Below are positions 3,619 through 45,100 of a stretch of 64,000 nt of DNA, piece after piece. Each line of letters starts with the position of its first letter. The stretch's first letter is position 1. Source of the DNA: Bugula neritina (taxonomy: Eukaryota > Animalia > Bryozoa); contig OZ037769.1 of assembly GCA_964035545.1 (NCBI GenBank), forward strand, positions 8,723,929-8,787,928, in the 5' to 3' direction. A program made the translations under genes and the position numbers. The notes beneath the pieces are model-generated. The model had not been told where the DNA came from, made no database searches, and saw nothing but the letters and a program-made list of their open reading frames with translations.

Positions 3619-6291
3619 AAGTTTTCTAGTACTAGTGCAATTGATTATAATTGGTTACCACTAGTAACAGTTGTATTTACAGTAGATAGGCTAACAGGTT
3701 CTATAACCATAATATTTAAGTAGAAATTATACTACTACAGTGTTTTCTAGCATACCCACTGCTTCTAATGGTAATTTATACATTACAGATCTGATTATGC
3801 TAAGTATACATGCTTTAATCTACCTCTTTATACATCTTGCTCTTGAAGCTTTAAGCATGTGTTTAGTTTGGCTAAGTCACCATATTATGGTAAATGGTTA
3901 TTGTCTATGTAACAGCAAAACTCAATCTTAAGGAATCTTGTTGACAAATTTACCATAACCTTATATTCTGAACCACAAAATTCTTGGTTTTACTCTGCTG
4001 ACACATGAAATCATACTTTCACTTCATGCATCATGTTTGCATTGATGTCTAGGAAACACAGCTCAAAGAGTGCTACTACCTGCAGGCAAACCTCAGACTA
4101 TTAGAATATCTGCATCACAGTTGCTGCCAAACACCACTATACTGTCTAATAACAACTCCAATGGACAGATGCTGACTCTGCTACCTTCAAACCAAACGGT
4201 GATGCAAAGGGTATAACCATTTTACTAATATGTACATTTTTAACATAAATTTATTCAACATCAACTATACTCAATATCGTAGACATTATTTGTAATTTTC
4301 AAAAAAAAAGATCTCACTTGAGTTCTATAGACATCGTTTCGGAAATGCAGAATGCTGTCTTTGCCTTCCTTCTCGGTCTATTTCTATCACTTCCGTTACA
4401 ACGCTACTCACATTCGATTGAACTATGAGTACATAATTACGTTACTGAAGGCACCTGTAGTCAAGCAAGTTTACCCTGGAATAGCACAACAGCAGCAGCA
4501 TGTATTGCACACCACAGATGCAGGTCATCATGAGTCTGCTATACTAGAGCCAGCACTGAGCAACTTCCCACCCGCAGGTCACATTGCCACAGCTACACCG
4601 GCAGCACCAGACACCAGCAAACTCAAGAAACCCTGCAATTGCACAAAGTCGCAGTGTCTCAAGCTGTAAGTCGCTGCAGTGTTTTCTATTCATTATTTCT
4701 GTAATTGAAAGAAGTTTGCTTATAGATGGACATAAAATCATTTCAGGTTGCGAATTTAAATTTCTCTTTGGTTTGATTAAAGGATAGCTCAACTTCCTGA
4801 CACTTTATATTAAAAGTAATACCTCCTAAAATTCCTAAAAGTTTCAGCTATCTATGTAATATCATGCAGAAAGCTTTACAAAGACAGAGGTCGTTTAGTT
4901 TACTAAATGAAACACCTCGTCCTGCTAGATTGGAATTTTCCCATGGAGTTAGTGGATATATTTATACATACAGGTACTGTGACTGCTTTGCGAATGGTGA
5001 ATTCTGTTCGAACTGTAATTGTCAAAACTGCTTCAATAACTTGGAGCATGAGGACGAAAGACAGAAGGCCGTCAAGCAGTGTCTGGAAAGGAATCCCCAA
5101 GCTTTTCACCCCAAAATAGGTGCACATCTTTCGGTTGCTTGCTTTAATGTTATTATGTGATTTGTTGTCCAAACCTTGTTTTTCACTTATTCGTCATATT
5201 CAAGAACTAGTATGTACAATATGCACTCAACAATACATTGAATATGTTTATTGCATACAAGCATTAGTGATTCATTAAATCTTACTGCATAAACGGTATA
5301 TGCAAATACTTCTTTTAACTTGTAAAATGAGCTACATTAGCTTTCTCCTCTTTTTATCACAAAAAGGGGCTCGAAGCTGTTTGCTAAACTTATAGGCCTT
5401 TTATTAAGAGTAGCATTAATAGCTTGACGGTTTTTGTCCAAATTATATAACAATATATATATGTTATATGAATTCTTACACGTTGAAGGTAAAGGAGCCA
5501 AAGCTGATGCGCGGCGACATCAGAAAGGATGCAACTGTAAGAGATCTGGGTGCCTGAAAAATTACTGCGAGTGCTACGAGGTTGGTATGCTATGCCATCA
5601 AGGAGAGTGTGTGTAACTTGTGTGTGCGTGTTTTTGTGTTTGTAAATTGTAATTGGTCAATTCTAGTGATGTTGAACTTGTTTAAAACGTAAAATTGTCT
5701 GTAAAACAACCAGTGTTGCAATACAGTACTACACAATACAGTACAGATAATTTTTTCTTCTATCTAGTTTTACCAATAAAAATTATTAGGAGAAATATGC
5801 ATTGTATATTTTGTGTCTTTAGGCCAAAATCCCTTGTGGTAGTATTTGCAAGTGTGTTGGATGTAAAAATAGTGAAGGGATAGATGGACACCGGAGCCTG
5901 ATGAGCTTAGCTGATGCCGCTGACTTGAGACATTCTCAATTGAACACAGCTAGCAACAAGTATCTGTATGAACAGAAGTCGAGGACCCCATTGTCATTGT
6001 ATGTTCTTACTTACCTTTTGACTTGCATGCTGCACACATTCCTTTGCTGGTATAACATTTATAAATCTTGTTGAAATGTTTTGAATGAGATGAGAAAATT
6101 TTTCTCGCCGTAGATCACCCCACCACTTTCTCAAGAAATGCACCATTGAAGCCATAGCAAATTGCCTCATATTGCAATGTAAAGAAGCTGAGACTGCTAA
6201 ATGCAATGATAGTACTACAGAGAAAGTGATACTGGAGGAGTTTGGAAGGTGCCTCAGTGAACTTATACATGTCAGCAGCTCCATGAAATGA
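754..6291 (+). CDS. LIN54: LIN-54 (tesmin/TSO1 CRC-domain subunit of MuvB/DREAM), multi-exon
   Basis: GT-AG exons at about 754-992, 2531-2674, 3239-3442, 4053-4210, 4451-4665, 4974-5119, 5489-5580, 5823-5959, 6114-6291. They give two CXC motifs, [13 protein letters not shown]|[19 protein letters not shown] and [19 protein letters not shown]|AKIPC, the linker [14 protein letters not shown] and the C-terminus [15 protein letters not shown] at 6289-6291. The 5' exons are less certain. Confidence 0.93.
3470..3620. repeat. (GTA/GTG)n trinucleotide microsatellite in a lin-54 intron
   Basis: Direct reading; it produces the spurious poly-Val tail of ORF 3249-3629, downstream of the GT donor near 3443. 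Confidence 0.95.
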
Positions 6292-28247: not shown

Positions 28248-29562
28248 TACAGTTACCTTCTTGATTCTTAAGGTAAGCTTTTCTTTGCTGGCTGATGAGG
28301 AACTGTAAATTATAAAGTTAGTGACTGTACAGGAGAATGTTCCATCATGCAATTATAGTTTCAGGCAGACCTTGGTCATTGGGTGAAACCTGCGCTATTA
28401 ATTACTAGTTCTAAATTGAGTCAAGTTATGGAATATTTGAAGAAATACTTTAAAACTGCAAAAAAATGTTAGGATTTACCTCAGGCTCTTTTTTTGTATC
28501 TCTCAGCCGGGCATGTTATCATTAACCTAACCACACTGATTTAATAGTGTAGTTGTAAATAGGTTCCTTGGATTTTATTATAAAGTTTACATTCATTGTA
28601 GTATGCCTATTAGTGTGTCCCAGCCTCAAGATTTTTCAAGGGAAGATAACTTCTATCATGCAGCAAACATGCGACCTTTGAAATGTCATTTCCTATTTCT
28701 AATGTTCGCAACTTCCCTAAATTTTATGATGAATGATTAAGCTTTTGGCAGATCTGTTCTTATCATAGTTTAGATGATGTTCAGATATGTCCCAACTTTT
28801 TTCACAATTTCATTTCAGCTTGTTTTTCTTTCATCCTGGTAGGATTCTGGCAAGAAATTATTCTGCTTTACCACTGTAGTAAGTAATCATGGACAACCAT
28901 ATGTTTAACCCTGTTCTTGTTTATTTTATAGAAATGTTTAGGAGTGGTTTTGTTGCGTATGATAGCTGACATAAAGAGAATACAAGAAAGTTTCGCCTTC
29001 AACTTCTTGGAGGATTTGTAATGGTCTAAAAGTTTTACTAATTATATTCACATATTTATATAATAGAGAAAACTAATAAAATTTCATTAACATTAACAGT
29101 TTTATTAATTTTGTGTTGCGCGACATAAAAGTAACATACATACAATTGATATATATATACAATAAGAATAATATAGTGTGCAGCAAAACAAATCTGAGGG
29201 CATCACGTAAGATAGTATACAATATATAGCACCAATGCAACTATGTCAAGCAATAAACAAGTAAATTGACACAAAATGTACATTTTGTAAGGTATATAAG
29301 CAATGAAAGGAAGACTAAAAAGCTAACTGTACAAGAAGTGACTATTGGTTTTATACAAACAAGACATGACTGAGAAATCATTTCATTTAACAGATGAATG
29401 GCAAAAATTATAAAAATGCTTAGTAATTGGCTGTGTCGCACTTTAATAAACCTAGAGAAAAATGTTTCATATAGACGAGGGAAGAACTCTCAAAGTAACC
29501 TGCATATTTCTAATTGGCATGTTTCAAGGACTGAGTGTGGGTGGACTGTGCTTGTTTGCTAG

Positions 29563-32500
29563 TCAACGGTGACCCAAGGCTAGATATGTCAGAGCACGAA
29601 CTGCACTCAGCTCTTTGTCGTTCAGAGACCTACAATTTATAACATTGTGATAGTTACACTTCAAGGTACCTCTTCACAGGCACAAATAGAACCTATTCTT
29701 GAAAAATCATACATACATGTTGTGAGGAAGCTCCACATTGTAGGACGGCGACGATGAACCATTTCTATTAACATGCACTTGTGTGGAAGCTGCAGAACGA
29801 AAGTAAAACAGTTATCATATTGATAAAGAAAACAATTTTTATTATACGCGAATAGCCCAACAGGTGGCTAGTTTTTATATAAATAAAACTGAATCAACAT
29901 GTCATTTATAAGCAAGATATGTATGCATGTCTTAGATTCATTTACTAGTGGTAACGACAAATATTATTGAAAAATTGTGTCTAATATCTATTTAATCTAA
30001 TTACAATAAAATATATGAAAATTGATAGATCTTTCAATTTCTAAAATAATGAAAATACTCTCAAAAGATAATGAAAAACAGAATGAGTTAAGATGTGAAC
30101 CAATAGATGCTCTGAGATAGACACTCACTAGGTGTAGGCTGATCGAGTAGAGATTGCTGATAGTGAGTCACAGAACTTGCATCATCCTCATGATCTGCCG
30201 ATGAGAGTGAGTCATATCTGTGAATAGGATTGGCAGATATTTCTGGATAATGTGAGGTGCTGTGGCCATACCTCAGAGTGTCATTCAAATACCTTTGTAG
30301 TATACTGTGTTTGTTTTCACCCTATAAACAACATAATGGACATATAGTTGCAGAGGGTTGGACCTTATGTACTTTGGAAGGTTTTCTTTAATAAAAGATA
30401 AACTAACCAGTCTTCGCCATCTCTATAAAGTAAAACCACCATCTTTTTTATACTACAACAGTAAAGTAGTTCAAAAATATCTATTAAGTTAAAGTGCAAT
30501 ACTGAGTTCAGTTTGTCAAAACACATAGATTTCATCCATCTTTTTATATTAATTGTTTAAAAACCAATTATTTTAGTTTAAAAACCAATTATTTCAGTTT
30601 AAAAGACATAACATATCAATTGTATAATAAGCTGTCAACACACACGAGCTAAATTAATAGAGAAATCATTATAGTCATAATACCATGATAAAACGATAGC
30701 AGTCTGCTCGTGCAGTTTACTACTGAGCTAGAATTCTAGTAAGCTGCATAACATGTTTTGAGCACGTTTTGATGTAATGATATTATAGCAGAAAGATGAA
30801 AGATATGTAATTTTAAATGTTCAACTCTTGATAAGTTAGTGCTATAATTTGCTGCATATGTAGAAACTTACATTATTATCGATTGTTGTTTAATGTTCTA
30901 TTTATAACTCTATCTAATACCAGCAGGATATTCTTATAGATAGCACTTAATTTAGAGAAAATATAGCGTACAACAACTATATTATCAGTCACAAACAACA
31001 TGTTTATATATTATATACTAGCATAATTGATTTTAGATTGCCACATTAAATACATCTCTAGTAACTTGCTTACAGCTGGCTTAGTCATATAGCAAACAGC
31101 AATGGTTCCATGCCTGCTGCTGCTTAGCACTTACTATATTACCAAAAAGCTGGAGGTCTGTCGATTGGTGGATGTGAAAAAAAAACATTAACTTACAGAT
31201 TGACATTGTCATTTGAATGCATGGTGTGTTATAACATATCCCACCCAGTAGACCTCCAGCCTTCCAGTGCTATAGAACAAACTAAGCAGTGCAGAACCTG
31301 CCAGAGAAGTTGAGATCCCTTGATGAAGGAGGTACAACTTCAACTCCACCAAAATCCTGGGCCATACAGAGATTTCTACTCATGCTCACTAATGTAAATG
31401 TTACTATTATTACAAAGGTGAAGTATCAGAATATCTAGATCACAACATTGATCTACAAAGTGGGAGCTATTGTTACTTAAACAAGTAGTGTATGAGGAAC
31501 GCCAACCTGCGGATAGACAGAGGGTTCTGGTTCACCCGCCTTCAGCCTTCTCCTGGCATTGCAAAACCAATTATTAACCTGCAAAAGTTCATTGATTAAA
31601 GTAATAATTCTATAGGAAGTGAAACAAGGAAGAAAGTTTAATGTTACATGAATATATAATATTGCAAACACTAGCAAAAAGCTAATTGCAAGAAAATAAA
31701 AAATTGAGAAATTATATACCATGTTTCCAAGATTAATTTTATGCAAAATTGATTTTCAAAGAAGCTATAGCCCCATAAAGAAAACTTCTTGATGTCTTTC
31801 TACAGTTACCAAAATATGCACCACTTTATGATTCTATGGTTTTGCAAGAAGAAAATGTGGCGGGTTTGAAATAGAATTATGTTTTTTTAGACTAAAACTG
31901 CAGCTCCTTTCTTGGAGTATGTAATTATCATAACATGTAGACATCATATTAAAGAATCCCTGACACACTTTACTTATATAGCACGAAAATATTCATCTAT
32001 ATCTTAGCTATCACTAGACCACCCCTTTGAGGGTGGATGGCTAGACTATTTTGTTTTATAACAAGATTAGTGCATGCATGTCCAGAAAACTTTCGGATTT
32101 CTAAGCTCTCAGTGCACACGTATTACGCCGGTTTCCGGTCTGCTTCGAGTCCTAGTTACTATATAACTAATAGTAATAATTGCATACTTTCACAGCATTT
32201 TATTTTTAGCCACTGCAACACACAGATAAATCACTAAACTGACATAAATTTTAAAACACAGAGTACAACTAAGGCTCAATGAAAAAAACAAATGATACCA
32301 TTTTATTATTGATATTAAGAGCTAAAGTTACTTCCGTTAGAAATTTTGAGCATCGGAAAAATGAAATAGCCTCACCCTCACGATGTAATTAGAACGGGTG
32401 GCTAAGTACGGGGATAACACGATATTGTTGAAAGAAATTAGCTAAATCCAACGAGTGGTAAACTTTTCTATAAAACATTACAAATAATTGCATATTCAAT

Positions 32501-35500
32501 TATGTAACTTATTACGCTTCCAAATAGATTATCATTACCGTAACCGGATATTACCAATATAACCTGTGCCTAGTAGTACTACTACTAGTAGTAGTCGCTC
32601 GCTATCTATATAAATTAGATTTCATATTCATATTGCCATTGGACTCTAATGAACAAACTTATTACCTATATTACTAGTTACACTTACTGTCGACATGACT
32701 ACACGAATGGCTTCAAGTTCTAAAGGCAAATGCAAAAGAAGAGTGTGTGAAGCTGCAATGTGTTCGTACAAGGAAAAACACATGTTTAAACGGCCTGCTG
32801 ATACTGCGTGTGGTGAAAAATGGACCAAGTTTGTCAATACGAAAAGAAAAAACTTTCTGCCTGATAACAACTCTCGTTTGTGTTTTCAGCATTTTGGTGA
32901 TGAACAATTTACAAACATGGGCATGTATAAAACAAAACTCATTAACATGTAAGTGAATAACTCACTCAAACTCATAGTCATAGTGATACTGACTAATGAC
33001 TTAGTGATTGTGATATAATTAGACGATAGGCTAATGATAGTTTTTTTAATGTTGATTTTCAACAATAAGTATAGCCTAACTATAACTATCAACTAGTATC
33101 AAGTATTACTACAAGTTGGTATAAGTCAATAGGATTGTCATGACCGTGTTGATTCAATTTCATGTGACTATGACATAAACTTGCAAGTACAAGTTTGCAT
33201 TTATGATTTACACGATAACCATTATTGTAAGGAAATTCATTTATAATGGCGATAATATGAAAGACTTATGATTATCAGAATGTGTCATAGTCACTTGGAT
33301 ACATACCATTAATATTATGATTCATACGCACTGATACTCATGCTATGAGTATGATACTGGTAATGGTGCCCATCATCAATACCAGTAAAAATTAATGGTA
33401 AATATTGTTCACTTATTGAAAGAATAAAAATTCATTGTCTTTGATTTACTCTTTAGATTGCATTTAGAGAAAACAGCAGTCCCAACTATTCATTTAGTGG
33501 AAACTGAGGGTGCAACTGGATGCACTCCATTAACTCCTCGGAAACAAAGTCAGCAGGCGGCCACTATCACACCTAAAGAAGCTCGCTGGTTAAAAAGAAC
33601 AGACCCTGGTTCTGTAAGGATTATAATATTGAAAATGCGATCTTGAGCAATAAAATTGAAATATGATATAGACAGCAATTGAGATTTTCTGCAGCTGTTT
33701 CAATAATACTTTTCCAGTTACCTTCATATATAATAATATTTTAGAGCTTTGCCAAGTCAAACAAAAAAACCAGCTCTCCATCGTAAGCCAGAAAAGAAGG
33801 GCCTACAGAAAGGAATAGGACACAACAAATATGTGCAAACACCTAAAAGGATGCAGAAAAAGATTAGAAGCAAAGCTGTTCAATGCTGGTATATAGAAAT
33901 ATGGCGAAATAGTATTGTTCACTTAGCTCAAAAACTGAATTCATAGCTTTTCTACATATTTATTTTTATTTAAAATGCATGTTCTAATGCAACAAAAAAC
34001 CAAATATTTTTGTGTAATGGAAATAATATTTTTAATTTTCCACCTCAAGGTGTGTCAAAAATAAATTTGGACAATATATCTACTTGTAGTCTCAGTTTCC
34101 ATTGAAATGTAGATATTGTAGAATATGATCTTAGAGTCACTTGAAAAGTTCAGCGCAAAAATAGTCACCATATTGAAGTATATTCACCATTATTGCAACT
34201 CAAACTCAACGGTAAATTAATTTCAAAGGTCAGGGAGATTGCAAATAATGAGGTTTATTCTCATAGTAAGCTGTACACACTACAAGAGGCAGTAGCAACT
34301 GACTGCTACTAAAAATCACCAGAGTGTTAATGTTCATAAATCTTCATTGTACACGAATTTGCTGAACATCCATTCAGCAAATTCTTCCTCATCTTCAGTT
34401 GGGGGGAATGTAGCTTGCACCCAATCGTATAAGCAAGCTGGTAAAGGGCGTCTCTCACCCTTTTTAATATCTGGAAACAGCCAGAACACCAAAAACCGGT
34501 AGCTGCAGAACCTTTTTTTAGTGTTGAGAGAATGGGCCTTCTCATCAAACAAATCATCTACCAAAATAAATGATTGGCTAAATAATCAAGTAAGACTATC
34601 TAGAAAAACTAACAATGACAGTTACTGATCTACAGTAGCAATTGACTAACCATGATATCTCAGGTAGCTGCTGTATGCAACTTCTAATACAGCTGGTTGC
34701 GTCAATTGCTGTACTCCCGGGTGCTGTGTTATACATTCCATGCTGCTATCTAATCGAAGGTTTGCAGCATGATCACGGCAACAAACAGACTGTTCCACTG
34801 TAGGCTGATTTTGGCAGCGGTGGCAAGTGCACCACTCCGTGGCTGGCCTTATATTTTTCTACAAAACAAACAAGCTTTTCTAAAAACGTTATTACCAGTA
34901 TCATCCACATTAAGTCCATTGATTACTGTGTCTAAATTTGTTTCCTGTATGTTTCTTTGTATTGAAAATTGAGTCCAATGAGGCTGAAGTTTGAAAATAC
35001 TTTAAAATCATGGGTTTTAAAATATTCCAAGTTTGCATTACTGTTCAAACTATTTTTATATTTATAGTTGAAAATTAATTAGATTTTTTATATCAAAACA
35101 AACTCATAATTTTTGCTATGAAATAAACTAATTTTCAGAAATTTTAAAATATTTTATTGTTGTTAGTACTATATGTTATACTATAAAAGCAGAAATTCAG
35201 AGAAATAGGGGGCTTAGAAATAAAATACTAAATGCTATCATCGTGAATGCAAGTTTCACATGATTATGTATGTGATTAACTTATTTTGTTAAGGATCGGT
35301 ATAACCACAATTACAATAAAAGTGAATAATAATTATCATTATTATGCATTTATAAAAATACGGTCTTTCCCTTGACTTAAATTATCAGGTAAATCTAACT
35401 ACAAATAATTAATACTAATACCTGTATTGGTAGTAGTAATAACAAAATTAGTATTGATCAAATATTTAATTACTTGACTGGAATTTGTAATCATTAAATT

Positions 35501-36741
35501 TAATGATTATCACTTTATTATTAATAATATTATTATTATATAAACCGGTAGCAATCATCAAATATTTAGCTTGTAATTTGATATCATGCTTGCTCTAAAG
35601 CTTTAGTAGCACAAAACTCAGCTATATTAACTAATTAAGCCAGGATCAATACGAGCATTGGCATTGAGCATTGGAATTTCGATTACAAAATGAAAATGAA
35701 ATATTATAATTATAATAATTTATAACTTATACTAGCTTATACTTATAACTTAAAGTTAAAGTATTACTATTAGTATTAGTATTACTATTAGTATTACGGT
35801 ATTAGTAACACTATAGTTTATAAAATTAAATCGTACTGATACTGTAAAATTATAAATATTATCACCTGTTGCTCATCAGTAACAGTAAAATCCTTGTCAT
35901 GACTATCATCTCCATTTTCATCTTGATACGTAAACGGCTCAAACTGATAGCCCATTACTTCAGAAATCTCAGTGACAGCGTGAGTGTGATTGTCATAGTC
36001 ATACTCATTGCGATTCTCACTGTGCTCTAAGTATTCTTCGTCAGAGCCAGATATGTTCATATTGATATCGTATTTATGTTATTTCTGTATTAGGTTTATC
36101 TTTATCACAATTACACTGCACAGACTCGGACACGGTAAGTTGGTAGCTATGTATTTATTGCCGCGAAATTTGTTTATGAAATAAAACCTAAATTCCACAA
36201 AAAAATACTAATTGGGGGCTAGACAGACGTCCGATAAATTAAAAATGCTAAAACTAAGGTTACATGCAACGGAAAATATAGCCAATACTTAATTTCCGAA
36301 TGTCTTACAGGCGGCGTTTCCATCTATTTCTCGCAACTGCGGTGTAATACGTCACAGAAGGGCGAAAAAAATTCTCGAAGTTTTTTGGACATGCATGCAC
36401 TAAAACTGTTATAAAACAAAATTGTTTAGACCTGAAACCCTAAAAGAGTGTTAAAATGATAGCTAAGACATAGATGAATATTTTCATGCTATATAAGTAA
36501 AGTGTGTCAGGAATTCTTTAATAATAAAATCAGATACAGAATAGGTATTTATCATAGCAAGTAATAGGTGTTTATGAAGTAGGTATTTATGATAGTAGGT
36601 GATAGGTGATTATGAAGTAGGTATTTAACATACTTGGTTAAACTTCAATCCAGATTGCTCAGCTAACAAAACTTTCTCAGCCCTTGATGGGTAGGGATGA
36701 GCTCTGTTTTTCAAAAACCAAAGCTTTAATGGCTGTGTCAT
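29563..36741 (-). CDS. MKX: Mohawk TALE-class homeobox protein (about 170 aa)
   Basis: Exons 36741-36634, 31578-31507, 30321-30129, 29789-29717, 29629-29563 are phase-compatible. Homeodomain MTQPLKLWFLKNRAHPYPSRAEKVLLAEQSGLKFNQ|VNNWFCNARRRLK has the TALE PYP loop. KHSILQRYLNDTLR and KELSAVRALTYLA resemble the vertebrate Mohawk motifs KSSLLNRYLNDSLR and KEINAAMALTNLA (recalled, not aligned). Confidence 0.88.
32695..33946 (+). pseudogene. THAP zinc-finger N-terminus of the element's transposase; no DDE core seen
   Basis: Exon 32695-32948 has the C2CH pattern CEAAMC...P...W..F...LCFQHF and splices (phase 2) to 33457-33613 with the THAP AVPTI box. A third Lys-rich segment (33749-33946) did not join in frame with the obvious sites. 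Under 400 bp remain before the opposite gene. Confidence 0.78.
34334..36060 (-). CDS. KolX-like / P2X7 cytoplasmic ballast-like Cys-rich protein, 208 aa, 3 exons
   Basis: Exons 36060-35866, 34858-34651 and 34557-34334, all GT-AG, in frame, no stops. Acidic N-terminus with YQFEP, then WCTCHRC..PT...SVCC...CITQHPG and RFCSYRFLVFWLF......RRPLPACLYDWVQATFP, paralleling P2X7 WCQCGSC..LCC..CIT and AYR....W...LPSC....IR..FP. Confidence 0.85.
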
Positions 36742-38869
36742 GTTCAGCAAACCAGAGATGGACACAAAACATGGGCCAAATCACTCAGTGTCTGCAAAAT
36801 TAGAAGATTACCCGCTCAATATCAACTATATGTTACATATGAAAGACATAAACGGAAATTAAAAAGAACAGTAAGCAATTCTGTGTGTTTTCAACAGCTC
36901 AAACAAGGAAGTATTATACTGACGTGAGTTTCAAGTGATGACAAAAATCTTCTAACAACTAGTACTTTCTCATTATAAATATGAGACCTGTAGCTTTCGC
37001 TCAACCTCATTCACCATACACAATACATGTATATACTAAAATGTAGGGAGGCAAAAATGTCTATAACAGCACCTTTTTGCCTCTATAACATAAAATGTTT
37101 AAAGTGCACTTGAGCTTAGGAGAAATAAATTCAATAAATTTCAAGTTTATAACAATATGGTAGCAGAAGACTTTTAACACAGCTGGAGGACTCGGTGACA
37201 AATTTGTAGTTGGCAAAAGTTTCTTGCATACTGGACGTTATTATAGACGAGTATGATTTATACTACTAGTAAATACTTTACAGTGCTCTACAATACAAAT
37301 GGCATCAAGAAACAAAAATATCACTTTGAATCTTTTACTCCTGCCCTTCCTCTTAAAACATAAGTAGGTTTAAGTTCTCAATTTAAATTAATTGCTGTCA
37401 GCATCTCAATTATTTTTTTAAATAGAAAAATTCCAAGATTCTGACCTAACTCAGTTGCTCTAACTTGAAATATATTTTTCATGACAATTAGTCTAGTATT
37501 TAAATACATTGCACTTGCAAGTGTGAAGTACCCATGACTGGTTACACTCACTTTTATCCCCAATCTTCTGATGGCAAACAATGGCACCATGAATAAAACA
37601 GTCTCTAATGACCTAGCAGCAGTTTCGTAGATGCGTCTTATTGTCTTTTTAAAAATAACTGCAAATAAAAAATAGCATTCTATAGATAATTAACAATATG
37701 CATTTAATTTGGTAAACGTCTTGTCAAGTATTGATGACATCAATATGTGATAAATATAATAAGATTTATTAACATTTCTAGACCAAGATAATTTACGATT
37801 CAGGTACTTTCAAGCTTAACTTTGAATTGATAGAACAGTAGTATCACCACTAGTATGACTATCTTTAGATTTACTTGTATGAGACAATTATGAGTATTAC
37901 CAAAATAAAGCAAATTAAATTTAAACATTACACTACTTGTGTAAATTTAGCCTGCCCCAAACCTAAAATGAAGTCAATGTCATATTTGACCTAACATTTG
38001 TCAAACAACGATTGATCTTGCAGCTAGTTATAAGTAAGGTTGCTATTTACAATTGTAGTACTAGTAATACTGATACTTATACTAATAGTTTTGATATTAT
38101 TTAATATTACGAAGCATATTTATTTCAAGACCAAAGCTCAATCAGTAAGTAAATAGAAATTAAAATTACGATTCACAGTTATTGAATTCAAACTTAAAGT
38201 AATAGTAACATGAAACCTAACCATCAGTCATCAACTCAAGTGCAACACTAGTTAACTGTAAAGCTGCATCTGATCTAAGTGTTACGCTAAGTCTAAAAGT
38301 GAGAGTAAAACACAGACTAAGACAAATAATCAAAAACTATTAGTTAAAGCTAAACTTACACTAGCTACAACAGTGGCATTGAGAGTTGAAGTAAGTGTCA
38401 GGCAGAAAGTAAAATCAACTCAAACTATTACATTCAATATTAGTATACTATTAGTAATACTCACTACTATCCGAGTATCAGTAAAGTAGGAGTATGAACA
38501 TAGTCATTAGAATTACATAAGTATAATCGCTCTATAACTATGAGTTATAGTATTGGCCTGAAGTCAAGGAAAAAAACTCAAATCGAAAGTGAAACAGAAA
38601 GAAAATTTACTTCTAGCTTTTATTTAAGCTAGACTAGCTGCTCAACACTAGCTGTCTGAGTTTATCACTTGTACTTACAGTGACTATTACTACTATTATT
38701 GAGTAATGAGAACTATGACTAACAGCATTACAACCACTAGAGCTATTTTAGTATAAATATATGTGAATATCAATATAAAATAATAATAGTTATTACAATC
38801 GTCAATACTCAATAGCCATTGGTAAATTTAAAGTTAATTATAATGTTACACTTAGAGTTGTTAAAACAC

Positions 38870-40950
38870 TCATATCTGGCAAGGCACCTAGTTCTGATGA
38901 CATTAGTAAAGCCTATTTAAATATTGACCCTGAGCAAACTGCCGAGTGTCTAAACCACATTTTTAATGCATCATTACCAGGGTTGGAGTAATTGTAATTG
39001 GGTGTAATTAATTACATTTTTCCAAGTAATTGTATGCAATTTGTAATTGTTGTATAAAAATGTAATTGCAATTGCAATTAATTACACTGCTAGTGCAATT
39101 TATTTTTACAATTACTTTATAAGTACATGTCAATTACTTCAAACTTTTAAATCTCAAAAAATTCAATCTTTTTCTACCATGCCAACTGTTCAAGAAAAAT
39201 TTCAGATTAATTCAATGTAGTATTGTATCACCCTATTAATCACTGTTGAGAACAAAGGAGGTTCTCCCACTGTCAAAATTGCCCGGGTAGTTGGACTCCA
39301 GAAGTGAGATTATATAACAGCTATTTGTCCCTTTAAAGAACTAAAGTAATTGTAATTGTAATTAATTACATTAATTTTAACTGTAATTATAATTGACAAA
39401 CTTTCATGTAATTGTAATTGTAATTAATCAAATTCACATGTAATTGACCCCAACCCTGAACATTACCCTCTGGAAAGCTTCCAAAAAGCTGGAAGACAGT
39501 TAATGTTTCTCCTTTACAAAAGTATGGCTCCAAAAGGAGGTGTCCACAACTATCGACCAACACCACTAACAAGGATTTTTATGAAATGCTGGAACATTTT
39601 TTCTTAAGGTTTTTGCTGGAAAAAGTTTATAAAGTATTACAGAATTGACAAAACAGCTTTAAAAAAGGACTGTCATGTGAAATGCAATTGTATACTACAA
39701 TGCAGGATATTTTCCAAGCTGTTGACAGCCGACAAATTGTTCATGCTGCCATTTTAGATTTCACAAAGGTCTTTGACTGAGTGCATCAACTCTCTATGAT
39801 TGCTGATATGGATGACTATCTCTTAGGCTGAATCTCAAACTTCCTGACAGAAAGATTTCAAAGCGTTGTCCTGCAAGGTCATGGCTAGGAGCCAATCTCC
39901 GTTACATCTGGTGTTCATCAAAGATCAGTCTTGAGCCCTATTTTATTTCTAGTCTTCATCAATGGCCTGCCAGACACCTTTGGTTGCTCAAACGACGGCC
40001 TCTTCGCTGATAATATTGTGTATCAAATGCCAACACTACTGATGACATCAAACAGTTTTACCAAAACCTTAATCGCTTAGGAGAATGGGCTGACATATGG
40101 GACATGTTGTCCAACATAGTCAAAAGTAAAATTATAGCTTTTAATTCTGCACAAGACTTAACGAAATACCCTTAAATAATCCTGAGGTCGAACATGTATG
40201 TAGTACCAAATACCTCCGAGTATAATCAAGTCAGATTGTAAGTTTGATGCACATATCCATGAGAAAGTTTTAAAAGCAAAGAAACAACTTGAAATGATTA
40301 GAAGAGCACTACACTCGGCATCGGCTTGTCAGCTTGCGTAGGTATAATACTCTCTGTCTACCACAACTGAAATATACTTGTGTGGTCTGGGACCCAGTTT
40401 GCAAAAGTGACATTGCTAGCTTGGAAGATGTTTATTCAGATGTTGTTCGCCTAATATGCGGCATAAAAGAACGGACAGATTTGAATTAGGCTATGAATAA
40501 ATTTGGGATAAAACCACTAGTATCCAGAAGAAGAAATAAATGCATCTATCTGCTTCTCCAGATTTAAGCCATAGATGAACACCACCCATCACTAACCGAA
40601 TCACATGAGCCCCTGGTTAAACAAACAATGTCAACAGTTCAAACTAGGTCTCAGGCTCAAGACATCTGCACTCAATCAGTACAAACCAAAATAAATAGTA
40701 ATACTATAATAGTTCAAGTTTATCACAGATAATTAGATATTTGAACATTGGATCAAACACAAAAAACCACAGCGCGGGCACATACTGCCCTTTCACCACG
40801 GAAAGGTTAAGCAGGCCTGTTTTGAATCCACTGTAAATTATATTTAAATTAAAATATATCTTCACTAACTACACGTACATACATGTAACCCATGATTGAA
40901 AATGTGGCACACCTTTTCTACCCAACAGGGTGGTTTAGTATAAAAAAATT
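38870..40950 (+). mobile_element. Degraded CR1/L2-group LINE, same family as 9340-10690, interrupted by a MITE
   Basis: Remnants SGKAP..D.I, LPKSWKTVNVSPL, NYRP, KGLSCEMQL, ILDFTKVFD, VTSGVHQ.SVLSPILF, LFADN and VWDP; 3' end GGCACACC...AGGGTGGTTTAGTA followed by an A-run. Confidence 0.9.
38978..39458. mobile_element. hAT-type non-autonomous element (481 bp) nested in the LINE
   Basis: TIR CAGGGTTGG...CCAACCCTG; 8-bp TSD ATCATTAC (38970-38977) and AACATTAC (39459-39466), one mismatch; subterminal GTAATT arrays at both ends. Confidence 0.88.
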
Positions 40951-42199: not shown

Positions 42200-45100
42200 A
42201 TGTCTGGTGGAGAAAACATCACCAAACTTAATGCAGCTGGTGATCAGCAAGAAACTGAGTTCACTGAAATGCCTGCTGCTAATGCCAACGATTCCAAGAC
42301 TAGGTCTAGCGGCGCATCCGAAAATGGTAGCGAGACGGATGCCTTTTTGGGAACTGCAAAACAAGAATCAGATGATTTGGAGGCTAGAAAAGTTGATGGT
42401 TATGATAAAGAGGCTGATGGACAAGGAAATGAGCACTTTTATGGACTTAGTCGAGAGGAGTTGGAGAAATACGCCAATGACCCCGTATGGGTGAAAACGA
42501 GAAGAGTTCTTTTTGCGATATTGGTTGTTGGATGGGTTGCTATGCTGGTCAGTGCTATAATTATAGTTGTCGTTACAGAAAAATGTCCTAAAAATCCAAA
42601 TTTGTTGTGGTATCAAGATGGTCTTGCATATCGTGTGGATACGGCAAAGTTTCAAGATTCAGACGCAAATGGTGTTGGAGATTTTACAGGTATGTATTTT
42701 TCTAATATATTAATTGTCATTATTTATTTACTACGTCTAGGTCCATTGCTACTTTCTTTCGATAAATTTTCGATATTCCATACATTTAGTCTTACAATCA
42801 CTATGGTTTTTCTGTTTCTGATGAATTATAAATGTAATACCTATACTAATACTTATAGGCTATAAGTTAAAATAATATATTGATATCATAAATACACATA
42901 TATTTTTGTTATTTGTGCTCAGTGCAGTCTCTGCTTAGTACATATTGTGACTATCATTATTGTGTAACTATAAGATTAAAATTAAATGATACCAAAACTG
43001 CATCTGTTAAAAAAAATTTGTTTTATACTTATAGTGTAGAACAATGCTTTATCATTATGCTAGGGCTTGAAAAACATTGTGATGTACGTTGGAATTTGGA
43101 ATAAGTTAATTTTAAGATGTTCATCCATGTGAACAATTTTTACATGGCTTAAGACCATATTTACTTTTAGTATGTATGTTTCTGATATCAAGTATCTATA
43201 TAAGCAAAAATTCTTCACTTCAGGTACTTCCTGCTAATAACTGGTTTGCATATAAATACTATTTTGTTACTTTATACCTCTACTAATGTTATACTTATCA
43301 AAAAGTTAACTACAGTATTCTCACTTTTAGTTCTTGCCTATTCCTATCACTACTATCCAATTATTTATACAATGTTATACTAATGATTCACTGACAAGTG
43401 ACATTTAGATTTATTTTATGTGAATTTTAAAAATCTAAATAATAATAGCGACATATTTTTGGAAAATCTCTAATGAAAGTGCTAGGCAATGGCAGATCTT
43501 CAATGACTTGTGGCCTGCAATATCACAATTTATTTCTCTGAGTCTCAACACTTTTATTCTAGGTATTGAACAGCACGCTGAACACTTTGCTGAGCTTTCT
43601 GTGGTGTCTGTATGGCTTGAAGATATGTCTAGCAAAATGGCTTTTGAGGGTAAAGATATAAGTTTGAACTCTACTGATGTTGGTACACTGGAAGCATTTG
43701 TAAACCTCACCAAAACTTTCAATAAAAAAGGTAAATTTAATATTTTTTCAGCAAGTATTATTTATTCATAATTTCTATTTTTTCCTGGACAGCTGAATCT
43801 ACAAATTGTAGTTTGTTCTGGTTGACAAGCTGCTCTTCTGATTAAATAGCTGGCAAGTAGTCATTAGCTCTTTGTGTACACTGCAAACATATAAAACACT
43901 TTATTAAGCTGTAGCAGGCTTTACATCAGAACAGCTTGGTTAAATAAATTCTAGTAGAGATGTGATAGTGAATAATGAATTATGCTTTGTTGGTTCGCAG
44001 GTATTCGAGTGGGTGTTGGCTTGACATTGACAGCTTCCCAGCTGTCTTCTAGTGATGGAGACATTACTTTCAAGGTACATGATTACAGAAAACTTAGTGG
44101 CCAAGTCAATTGTTAATATACATCTAAACAGTGCCATTATTAAATGTTTAAAGAGCGTTCACTATTTTTTTTAATTCTTATTTGATTTTTATGCCTAATT
44201 CATCATAATTCTGATAGCTTGAGATCCGTGGGAGTCAGCATGAACTGTAAGTAATTAGCATAAAGGTTAAGGGTCAAATTCCAGAATCTTGTAGATGATA
44301 GCTGAAATAAATTAATTCTTCTGTTAGTGTATATTAAATTACACTTGTTCCCTAATTACTATCATATTCCCACATTGCTAGCACTAATCACCTCTCTTTG
44401 TGATGAATTCTTATCCATTCCTATCAGTAGCTGACCTACATTCACAAGCCAGCTGCCTCCTCAGGGTTTTATCTATTACTAACAGGGTTTTCACTTCATG
44501 TAATATGTACTTATTGATTGGCATTCAAGTATAATACTTCCACCAGGGGGATCAGTCTACTTTGAGTTGATAAGTGTTTACAATTTGTCTGGTTGCTTTT
44601 CATCAACCTTGTACCAAATAAGCCCTGTTGTGAAAAACAAGGTGCATTTTCTAAATCCTAAGACTTTAACAAATGGCCTTGTATACCTAAAGTGGTGTTA
44701 GTTGATTGTCTCCCTTGTCTCTTTTCTGTCCTAACTCTGTCCTATTAAATCTAATTGGTTTCTACATGATATCCCAGTATGTTACTGGTCCATCACTTCT
44801 CCCTTCAATATTAATTATGTGTGGCAATGAGCAACTATCTATCTACTTATTTTAGGGAACTTAATAAAGAAGGCAGGCAGTTTAGAATCTGCACTGTTAT
44901 TGTCTAGCTCAATTATACCTCCATAGTGTCACATCACACGCACTATAGCAGGCTATATGATGTTATTGATTAGTGTCACTTAGTTTCACAATTATACTCA
45001 TGGATTTAACTCTACTTTGTATTAGGAATACTGTGTGTTTGCCAACAGCTGCTTGTTCTACTTGTCAATAGATGTCAGCTATCAATTTTGGATTTCTTTT

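Follow-up and report, generated by a model that had tools for sequence, protein, structure and literature searches.

A probable young deletion derivative of a Kol0-lineage Kolobok transposon that keeps THAP exons and a KolX gene in Bugula neritina

Introduction

How does a transposon that lacks the catalytic core of its transposase come to keep two other coding segments, one at each side? The question is raised by a 4565-bp element in a stretch of 64,000 nucleotides, here called the window, from the bryozoan Bugula neritina (GenBank assembly GCA_964035545.1, contig OZ037769.1, positions 8,723,929 to 8,787,928 of the forward strand). The element carries THAP-type transposase exons on the plus strand and, convergent on the minus strand, a gene resembling KolX. 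Kolobok elements of the Kol0 lineage encode both a transposase and KolX, a protein with the fold of the P2X7 ballast (Kojima and Bao 2022, Mob DNA, PMC9587614). The window element is most probably a very young, non-autonomous derivative of a Kol0-lineage Kolobok DNA transposon, amplified after an internal deletion. Its THAP exons and KolX were in all likelihood retained mainly because they lie close to the ends, and the open KolX frame of this copy very probably reflects youth, not a need for the gene.

Much of the puzzle is thereby cleared: the locus holds an ordinary non-autonomous Kolobok copy, and the link between Kolobok and KolX has been in print since 2022. Its interest lies in the family, a very young one of the Kol0 lineage and perhaps still mobile, whose many independent deletion products record how post-excision repair makes non-autonomous elements. 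The window belongs to the contig referred to as C5, and genome searches cover the 216-Mb assembly.

Ends of the element

The element occupies window positions 31953-36517, begins with AGAAT, finishes with ATTCT and lies between two TTAA tetranucleotides in a window of AT-rich DNA (~33% GC). Its boundaries are as follows.

31949..31952, no strand: left TTAA target-site duplication; all 23 young copies of the family are TTAA-flanked, each with different outer flanks
31953..32092, plus strand: left terminal inverted repeat, which starts AGAATCCCTGACACAC
36378..36517, minus strand: right terminal inverted repeat, which ends GTGTGTCAGGAATTCT
36518..36521, no strand: right TTAA target-site duplication, read at the flank as in all 23 young copies

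The inverted ends extend over 146 nt and are 85% complementary (arms 31947-32092 and 36378-36523), in agreement with the TTAA duplication, AG...CT ends and terminal repeats of ~150 bp given in the original prediction, which was made from the letters of the window. With up to three mismatches allowed, the genome contains 334 occurrences of the terminal 25-mer together with TTAA and none of a reversed control, so the ends are a real repeated signal. The AG...CT termini follow the RR...YY rule of Kolobok (PMC9587614), and the TTAA duplication characteristic of Kolobok is present in the window copy and in all the young copies. Only ~445 bp without a long open reading frame separate the end of the third THAP-gene exon (33888) from the KolX stop codon. 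A DDE core therefore cannot fit in the window copy, as had been predicted together with the Kolobok identity, and 2846 bp are deleted there. Since the window copy lacks the Kolobok DDD/E transposase core, it belongs to Kolobok by descent, as a non-autonomous derivative. An Rfam search of window 29000-39500 gave no match.

The termini of the family are found at ~330 sites genome-wide, tiny pairs that resemble MITEs (miniature transposable elements with inverted repeats) among them. A second, numerous subfamily has the same 25-nt terminus. Its members, namely the many sites with the variant ...CTTCAC and a facing pair of the termini less than 100 bp apart at C1:26734010-26734102, look like MITE-like relatives. 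No other part differs as much between the family's two clades as the left inverted end (31953-32092 in the window), where 16 of 140 sites carry shared variants against 22 of 1178 in other non-coding sequence (p=3e-7), which suggests that this end was exchanged or converted in one clade.

The KolX gene

As read from its copies, the full family element has a predicted multi-exon THAP-DDD/E transposase gene and, convergent on the other strand, a predicted three-exon KolX gene. In the window copy, the 208 codons of KolX are divided among exons 36060-35866, 34858-34651 and 34557-34337, followed by a stop codon at 34336-34334. Read by hand, the introns are all GT..AG and the frame is unbroken across the exons, so the three-exon, stop-free minus-strand gene of 208 residues stands as predicted.

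35866..36060, minus strand: KolX exon 1, acidic N-terminus; no family match in Pfam
34651..34858, minus strand: KolX exon 2, Cys-rich (WCxCxxC ... CC ... CIT); matches P2RX7_C profile positions 78-116, E=0.006
34334..34557, minus strand: KolX exon 3 including the stop codon 34334-34336; matches P2RX7_C profile positions 133-185, E=0.004

Each exon was searched as its own query. Exons 2 and 3 score 17.0 and 17.5 bits with P2RX7_C (PF20478), each under the gathering cut-off of 23.5, but the matches are adjacent and colinear and would together give ~34 bits. P2X7 chains are the only PDB matches of exon 3 (6u9v residues 538-593, E=0.02). No match of exon 2 appeared in the PDB sequences at E up to 1, nor any candidate in a word-index protein search, which covers proteins of 38-120 aa only and is silent on longer relatives; exon 1 found no match in Pfam. 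The protein has eight cysteines (WCTCHRC, VCC and ECIT in exon 2, FCS and ACL in exon 3), which occupy the positions of the published KolX/P2X7 alignment (Figure S6, PMC9587614), where seven conserved cysteines bind Zn. The colinear P2RX7_C matches, the PDB match of exon 3 and the motifs point to a predicted KolX with the P2X7 ballast fold, the second protein of Kol0, in line with the ballast-like gene of the original prediction.

The resemblance to the P2X7 ballast (6u9v/6u9w) is divided between exons: exon 3 matches rat P2X7 538-593, and exon 2 the Zn-binding, Cys-rich part of P2RX7_C. Unlike the P2X7 tail or zebrafish Nanor (a proposed domesticated KolX), this is a stand-alone protein of a mobile element with an acidic N-terminal exon, and not a single-copy host gene. 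Exon 2 is open in 23 copies at ≥94% identity, and its limits are identical in a sister Kol0 family of the same genome. At the end of exon 3, 33 of 47 residues are identical between the two families, with a proportion of non-synonymous differences (pN) of 0.19 against 0.90 at synonymous sites (pS), which are saturated. KolX is therefore a long-conserved transposon protein.

The THAP exons

Three exons of the transposase gene remain in the window copy.

32695..32948, plus strand: transposase exon 1, THAP zinc finger; Pfam THAP, E=1e-5, 26.7 bits
33457..33613, plus strand: transposase exon 2, AVPTI motif; a private 2-nt deletion lies between 33609 and 33610
33745..33888, plus strand: transposase exon 3, basic stretch resembling a nuclear localisation signal (NLS); last exon kept, with the downstream exons deleted

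The C2CH finger and the AVPTI motif of a THAP domain are both present, and the Pfam score of exon 1 exceeds the cut-off of 23.9 bits; exons 2 and 3 gave no Pfam match. A plus-strand THAP exon is thus present as predicted, but the gene is damaged in this copy. Codon 33 (32791-32793), the aromatic position of the THAP 'FP' motif, is TGG (Trp) in 19 of 22 copies and CGG (Arg) in the window copy, and this W33R change is common to the clade of the window copy. The 2-nt deletion at 33609/33610 is private to the window copy and shifts the frame into exon 3, whereas the frame continues into that exon in the 21 copies that keep the TT. With both lesions, decay of the THAP gene has begun. In two copies of the family, codon 43 of the THAP frame is a stop.

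Elsewhere in the genome, an open THAP exon at C4:22629984-22630229 is 74% identical to exon 1 of the family and has no transposase-core match nearby. It may belong to another relative or be a stand-alone THAP gene.

Copies of the family

A genome search with the element recovers eight copies of the same structure (L001-L008, the S-type), the window copy being one, and at least 14 more that have extra DNA at element position 2165. The S-type copies differ by 0-0.9% in substitutions and are spread over five contigs, each at a TTAA site and with flanks unrelated to those of the others. Because TTAA is found on both sides and the outer flanks are unrelated, each copy is a separate insertion. The window copy differs from L002 and L003 by 1-2 substitutions, and L005 and L006 are identical though on different contigs. 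A single recent deletion, one of the two origins first proposed, does not agree with these copies: one junction is common to eight of them, and the same region is deleted in other ways in at least 14 more.

The longest copy, L031 (C8:9090471-9097889), measures 7419 bp and has 2846 extra bp exactly at the S-type junction; among the family copies compared, no other has this stretch whole. The extra DNA encodes the D2 (TTDRH), DxxH (DTWH), Zn-finger and E (ELESFH) blocks of a Kolobok-type transposase. Its open pieces align with the sister family (L051, L052), which possesses a full transposase core, through a Zn-ribbon, the second-Asp TTDRH, DTWH, the Zn-finger and ELESFH. Sister Kol0 elements are situated around C6:5.892-5.901 Mb and C5:13.489-13.498 Mb. 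The blocks of the sister family agree in turn with Kolobok-1_BF and Kolobok-1_NV in the published alignment, GDGRCDSPG included; taken together, the blocks of the long copy and the sister family are GDGRCDSPG, AME, TD, DxWH, a Zn finger and LExFH.

The family resembles the Kol0 elements Kolobok-1_XT, -1_NV and -1_BF in its TTAA duplication, its RR...YY termini, a second gene for KolX with WCxCxxC, CC and CIT motifs and P2RX7_C matches, and the Kolobok-type D2, DxxH, Zn-finger and E blocks of its long copy. It differs from these examples in that the window copy is without a catalytic core and the family transposase is THAP-initiated and split into many exons.

As the autonomous partner, L031 can be discarded. 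Some 150 residues are gone, including the block of the first catalytic Asp, and its KolX has a 1-nt deletion. At the site of the missing block, L031:3944-4044 is a 101-bp inverted copy, 100% exact, of the element's own right flank (L031:7927-8027), which looks like damage in place via template switching during repair. The first-Asp block GDGRCDSPG occurs at only four loci, all of the sister family, and a complete transposase of the family under study was not found in the assembly. With two copies identical, this leaves the question of who moves them.

A total of 46 minority insertions occur in ~20 young copies, and 23 of these have a length of exactly 6 bp. The neighbouring 6-mer is duplicated in nearly every one of them, and the 0-2 departures from it, in many cases an exchange of G and C, lie at the junction end. 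Examples are found in the window copy at 35528 (TATTAT) and 35750 (TTAAAG), in L004 and L008 near ~32800 (ATACTC) and in L007 near ~32889 and ~35944, and the frequency is roughly one per 10 private substitutions. These insertions have the appearance of footprints left on excision by a different, very active element that duplicates 6 bp of its target.

Deletion types and breakpoints

The S-type deletion is marked in the window by a single feature.

34115..34117, no strand: S-type deletion junction, 3-nt microhomology; 2846 bp of L031 are missing; common to L001-L008

Across the family, eight deletion types can be mapped on the 7419-bp coordinates of L031, the ranges of types D, H and G being derived from breakpoints.

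Type S (8 copies): L031 2151-4996
Type A (8 copies): L031 2391-4945
Type B: L031 2307-4805
Type C: L031 2544-5125
Type D (complex): L031 2250-5154, with 2514-2733 retained
Type E: L031 2333-5191
Type H: L031 2787-5218
Type G: L031 2800-5252

The same central part is lost in every type, and six or more of the eight are not derivable from one another. Left breakpoints fall at 2150-2799 and right breakpoints at 4806-5253; most junctions have microhomology of 1-7 nt, with a short filler instead in type H. The left arms kept measure 2150-2799 bp (mean 2444 +/- 243) and the right arms 2167-2614 bp (mean 2333 +/- 155), lengths that do not differ (Mann-Whitney p=0.38). Exon 3 of the THAP gene ends ~1913 bp from the left end and KolX 2203 bp from the right end, so both genes come with arms of this length as a matter of course. 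Type H ends at the KolX stop codon and type G clips the last 12 codons.

After P-element excision, two-ended repair synthesis of kilobase tracts is documented to abort and give way to end joining (PMC3330096). The symmetric kept lengths are as expected from stalled two-ended gap repair of this kind, and from the deletion products, which can be read directly in the copies, we infer such a mechanism. A sister copy would have served as template for filling the gap left by excision, from each end inward, until synthesis halted after ~2.15 kb (left) and ~2.42 kb (right), and the two halted ends would have been joined at the 3-nt microhomology 34115-34117. The joining would have removed transposase exon 4 onward, all catalytic blocks included, and the first three transposase exons and the whole of KolX would have survived only by lying within the outer 2.2 kb of each side. 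Since the derivative still had both 146-nt ends, a transposase acting in trans would then have carried it, very recently, to eight or more TTAA sites.

Kilobase end tracts joined at 1-7 nt of microhomology, in several independent types, recall aborted synthesis-dependent strand annealing (SDSA) at Drosophila P{wa} (PMC3330096) and microhomology-driven miniaturisation into MITEs (PMC3814204). Unlike in the P{wa} assays, the process is here deduced only from its products, and the kept tracts are unusually uniform (~2.2-2.8 kb).

Selection on the retained genes

The copies show too few differences for a ratio of non-synonymous to synonymous substitution rates (dN/dS), and counts of shared and private variants in exons and non-coding sequence were used instead. 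Decay among the copies is neutral: private substitutions amount to 4.9% in KolX exons and 5.6% in non-coding sequence and are mostly non-synonymous. KolX is open in 8/8 S-type copies; L031 and five of eight A-type copies have a KolX with a frameshift or a partial deletion. One 2-nt KolX deletion is shared by three A-type copies at different loci (L033, L013 and L017), so these copies moved after KolX broke. In the THAP exons, shared variants are not depleted (11/465 against 22/1178 in non-coding sequence), which indicates no constraint.

Several observations weigh against retention by position. The frequency of variants shared among copies is about six-fold lower in KolX exons than in non-coding sequence (2/449 against 33/1179, p=0.002). 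All eight deletion types spare THAP exons 1-3 and only one cuts KolX, a pattern that selection for both genes could also give. The source of transposase for the latest jumps was not found in the assembly, where the only long copy of the family is the one without the first catalytic-Asp block, and the THAP exon of the sister family is merely 38% identical. The depletion of shared variants argues for constraint on KolX in the lineages that yield new copies, as would be the case had those lineages been working elements. The depletion is no proof that deleted copies need KolX, which is dispensable in cis. Conserved along propagating lineages yet dispensable in cis, KolX offers a modest hint as to what the ancestor of the P2X7 ballast does.

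Alternative readings

The strongest alternative, though an unlikely one, is selected retention. A THAP-only protein and KolX made by deleted copies would act on the ends of the family, either as a repressor like KP or as helpers that borrow catalysis, and derivatives keeping both genes would out-propagate others. Small deleted P elements do encode the 207-aa, THAP-bearing KP repressor (PMC7776569), and as in KP, an internal-deletion derivative keeps the N-terminal THAP part and has spread to several copies. The spared THAP exons fit this reading, given that the catalytic exons are lost in all eight independent types, with no breakpoint inside THAP exons 1-3, as does the six-fold depletion in KolX. 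In addition, the KolX changes found in all or nearly all S-type copies are both synonymous, every S-type copy has an open KolX, and a THAP-only frame of ~200 codons is open in 7/8 of them, the frameshifted window copy being the exception. However, the symmetric kept lengths match repair geometry, the deletions of types G and H extend up to or into the end of KolX, and three A-type copies moved with a frameshifted KolX. The THAP exons are unconstrained, with a codon 43 stop in two copies and W33R in the window clade, and open frames mean nothing in copies as young as those of the S-type. Short derivatives without either gene exist (e.g., C1:3630185-3631336), beside hundreds of other ends. The comparison with KP is also limited by the different superfamily, the second gene that is kept as well and the unconstrained THAP, which in the window copy has W33R and a frameshift; repressor activity is here only conceivable.

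In its fullest form, this alternative would make the deleted copies a self-interested, semi-autonomous lineage that expresses a THAP-only, end-binding protein and KolX, borrows a catalytic core and tunes transposition or competes for it, much as KP does. Such a lineage, which seems improbable, would explain at once why eight deletions spare both genes and why KolX is conserved in propagating lineages, and would give KolX, as ancestor of the P2X7 ballast, a first testable role. Selective retention of THAP and KolX, which the original prediction had offered for the family, is not supported: the arms are symmetric, KolX is clipped or broken in siblings, THAP is unconstrained and private KolX mutations are as common as non-coding ones. 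Of the copies which that prediction would compare, the eight with the same structure were found, and no complete full-length partner of the family was found in the assembly.

Host domestication, in which KolX or the THAP protein at this locus would be a cargo gene under host co-option, as proposed for P2X7 and zebrafish Nanor, is very improbable. KolX has been domesticated elsewhere (PMC9587614) and its frame is intact in the window copy, but the locus is only one of eight near-identical mobile copies with intact ends and TTAA duplications. Sibling copies decay, and the window copy is not distinguished from them and is probably in or next to a homeobox gene. The mobility of near-identical copies and the decay of siblings led to rejection of this reading.

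Least likely of all is a piggyBac-type element, to which the TTAA target and the KolX-like proteins noted in some piggyBac families (PMC9587614) would be suited, but which is rejected on the AG...CT ends (the RR...YY pattern of Kolobok), on the core blocks of the long copy and sister family, as in Kolobok-1_BF and -1_NV, and on the Cys pattern, conserved in this KolX and mostly lacking in piggyBac versions (PMC9587614); the transposase pieces of both families gave no match to the Pfam piggyBac model (DDE_Tnp_1_7), only weak matches to MULE/Mutator-like models.

Neighbouring host genes

An open frame at window 31477-31746 on the minus strand has NNWFCNARRRLK as its end and corresponds to the last part of a TALE-class homeodomain (Pfam Homeobox_KN, E=5e-4). 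The element lies ~200-350 bp from this frame and is probably in or next to an intron of that homeobox gene. Window 42200-42865 (plus strand) holds an exon that matches the N-terminus of SLC3A2, the 4F2 heavy chain (Pfam SLC3A2_N, E=6e-25), and belongs to an ordinary host gene.

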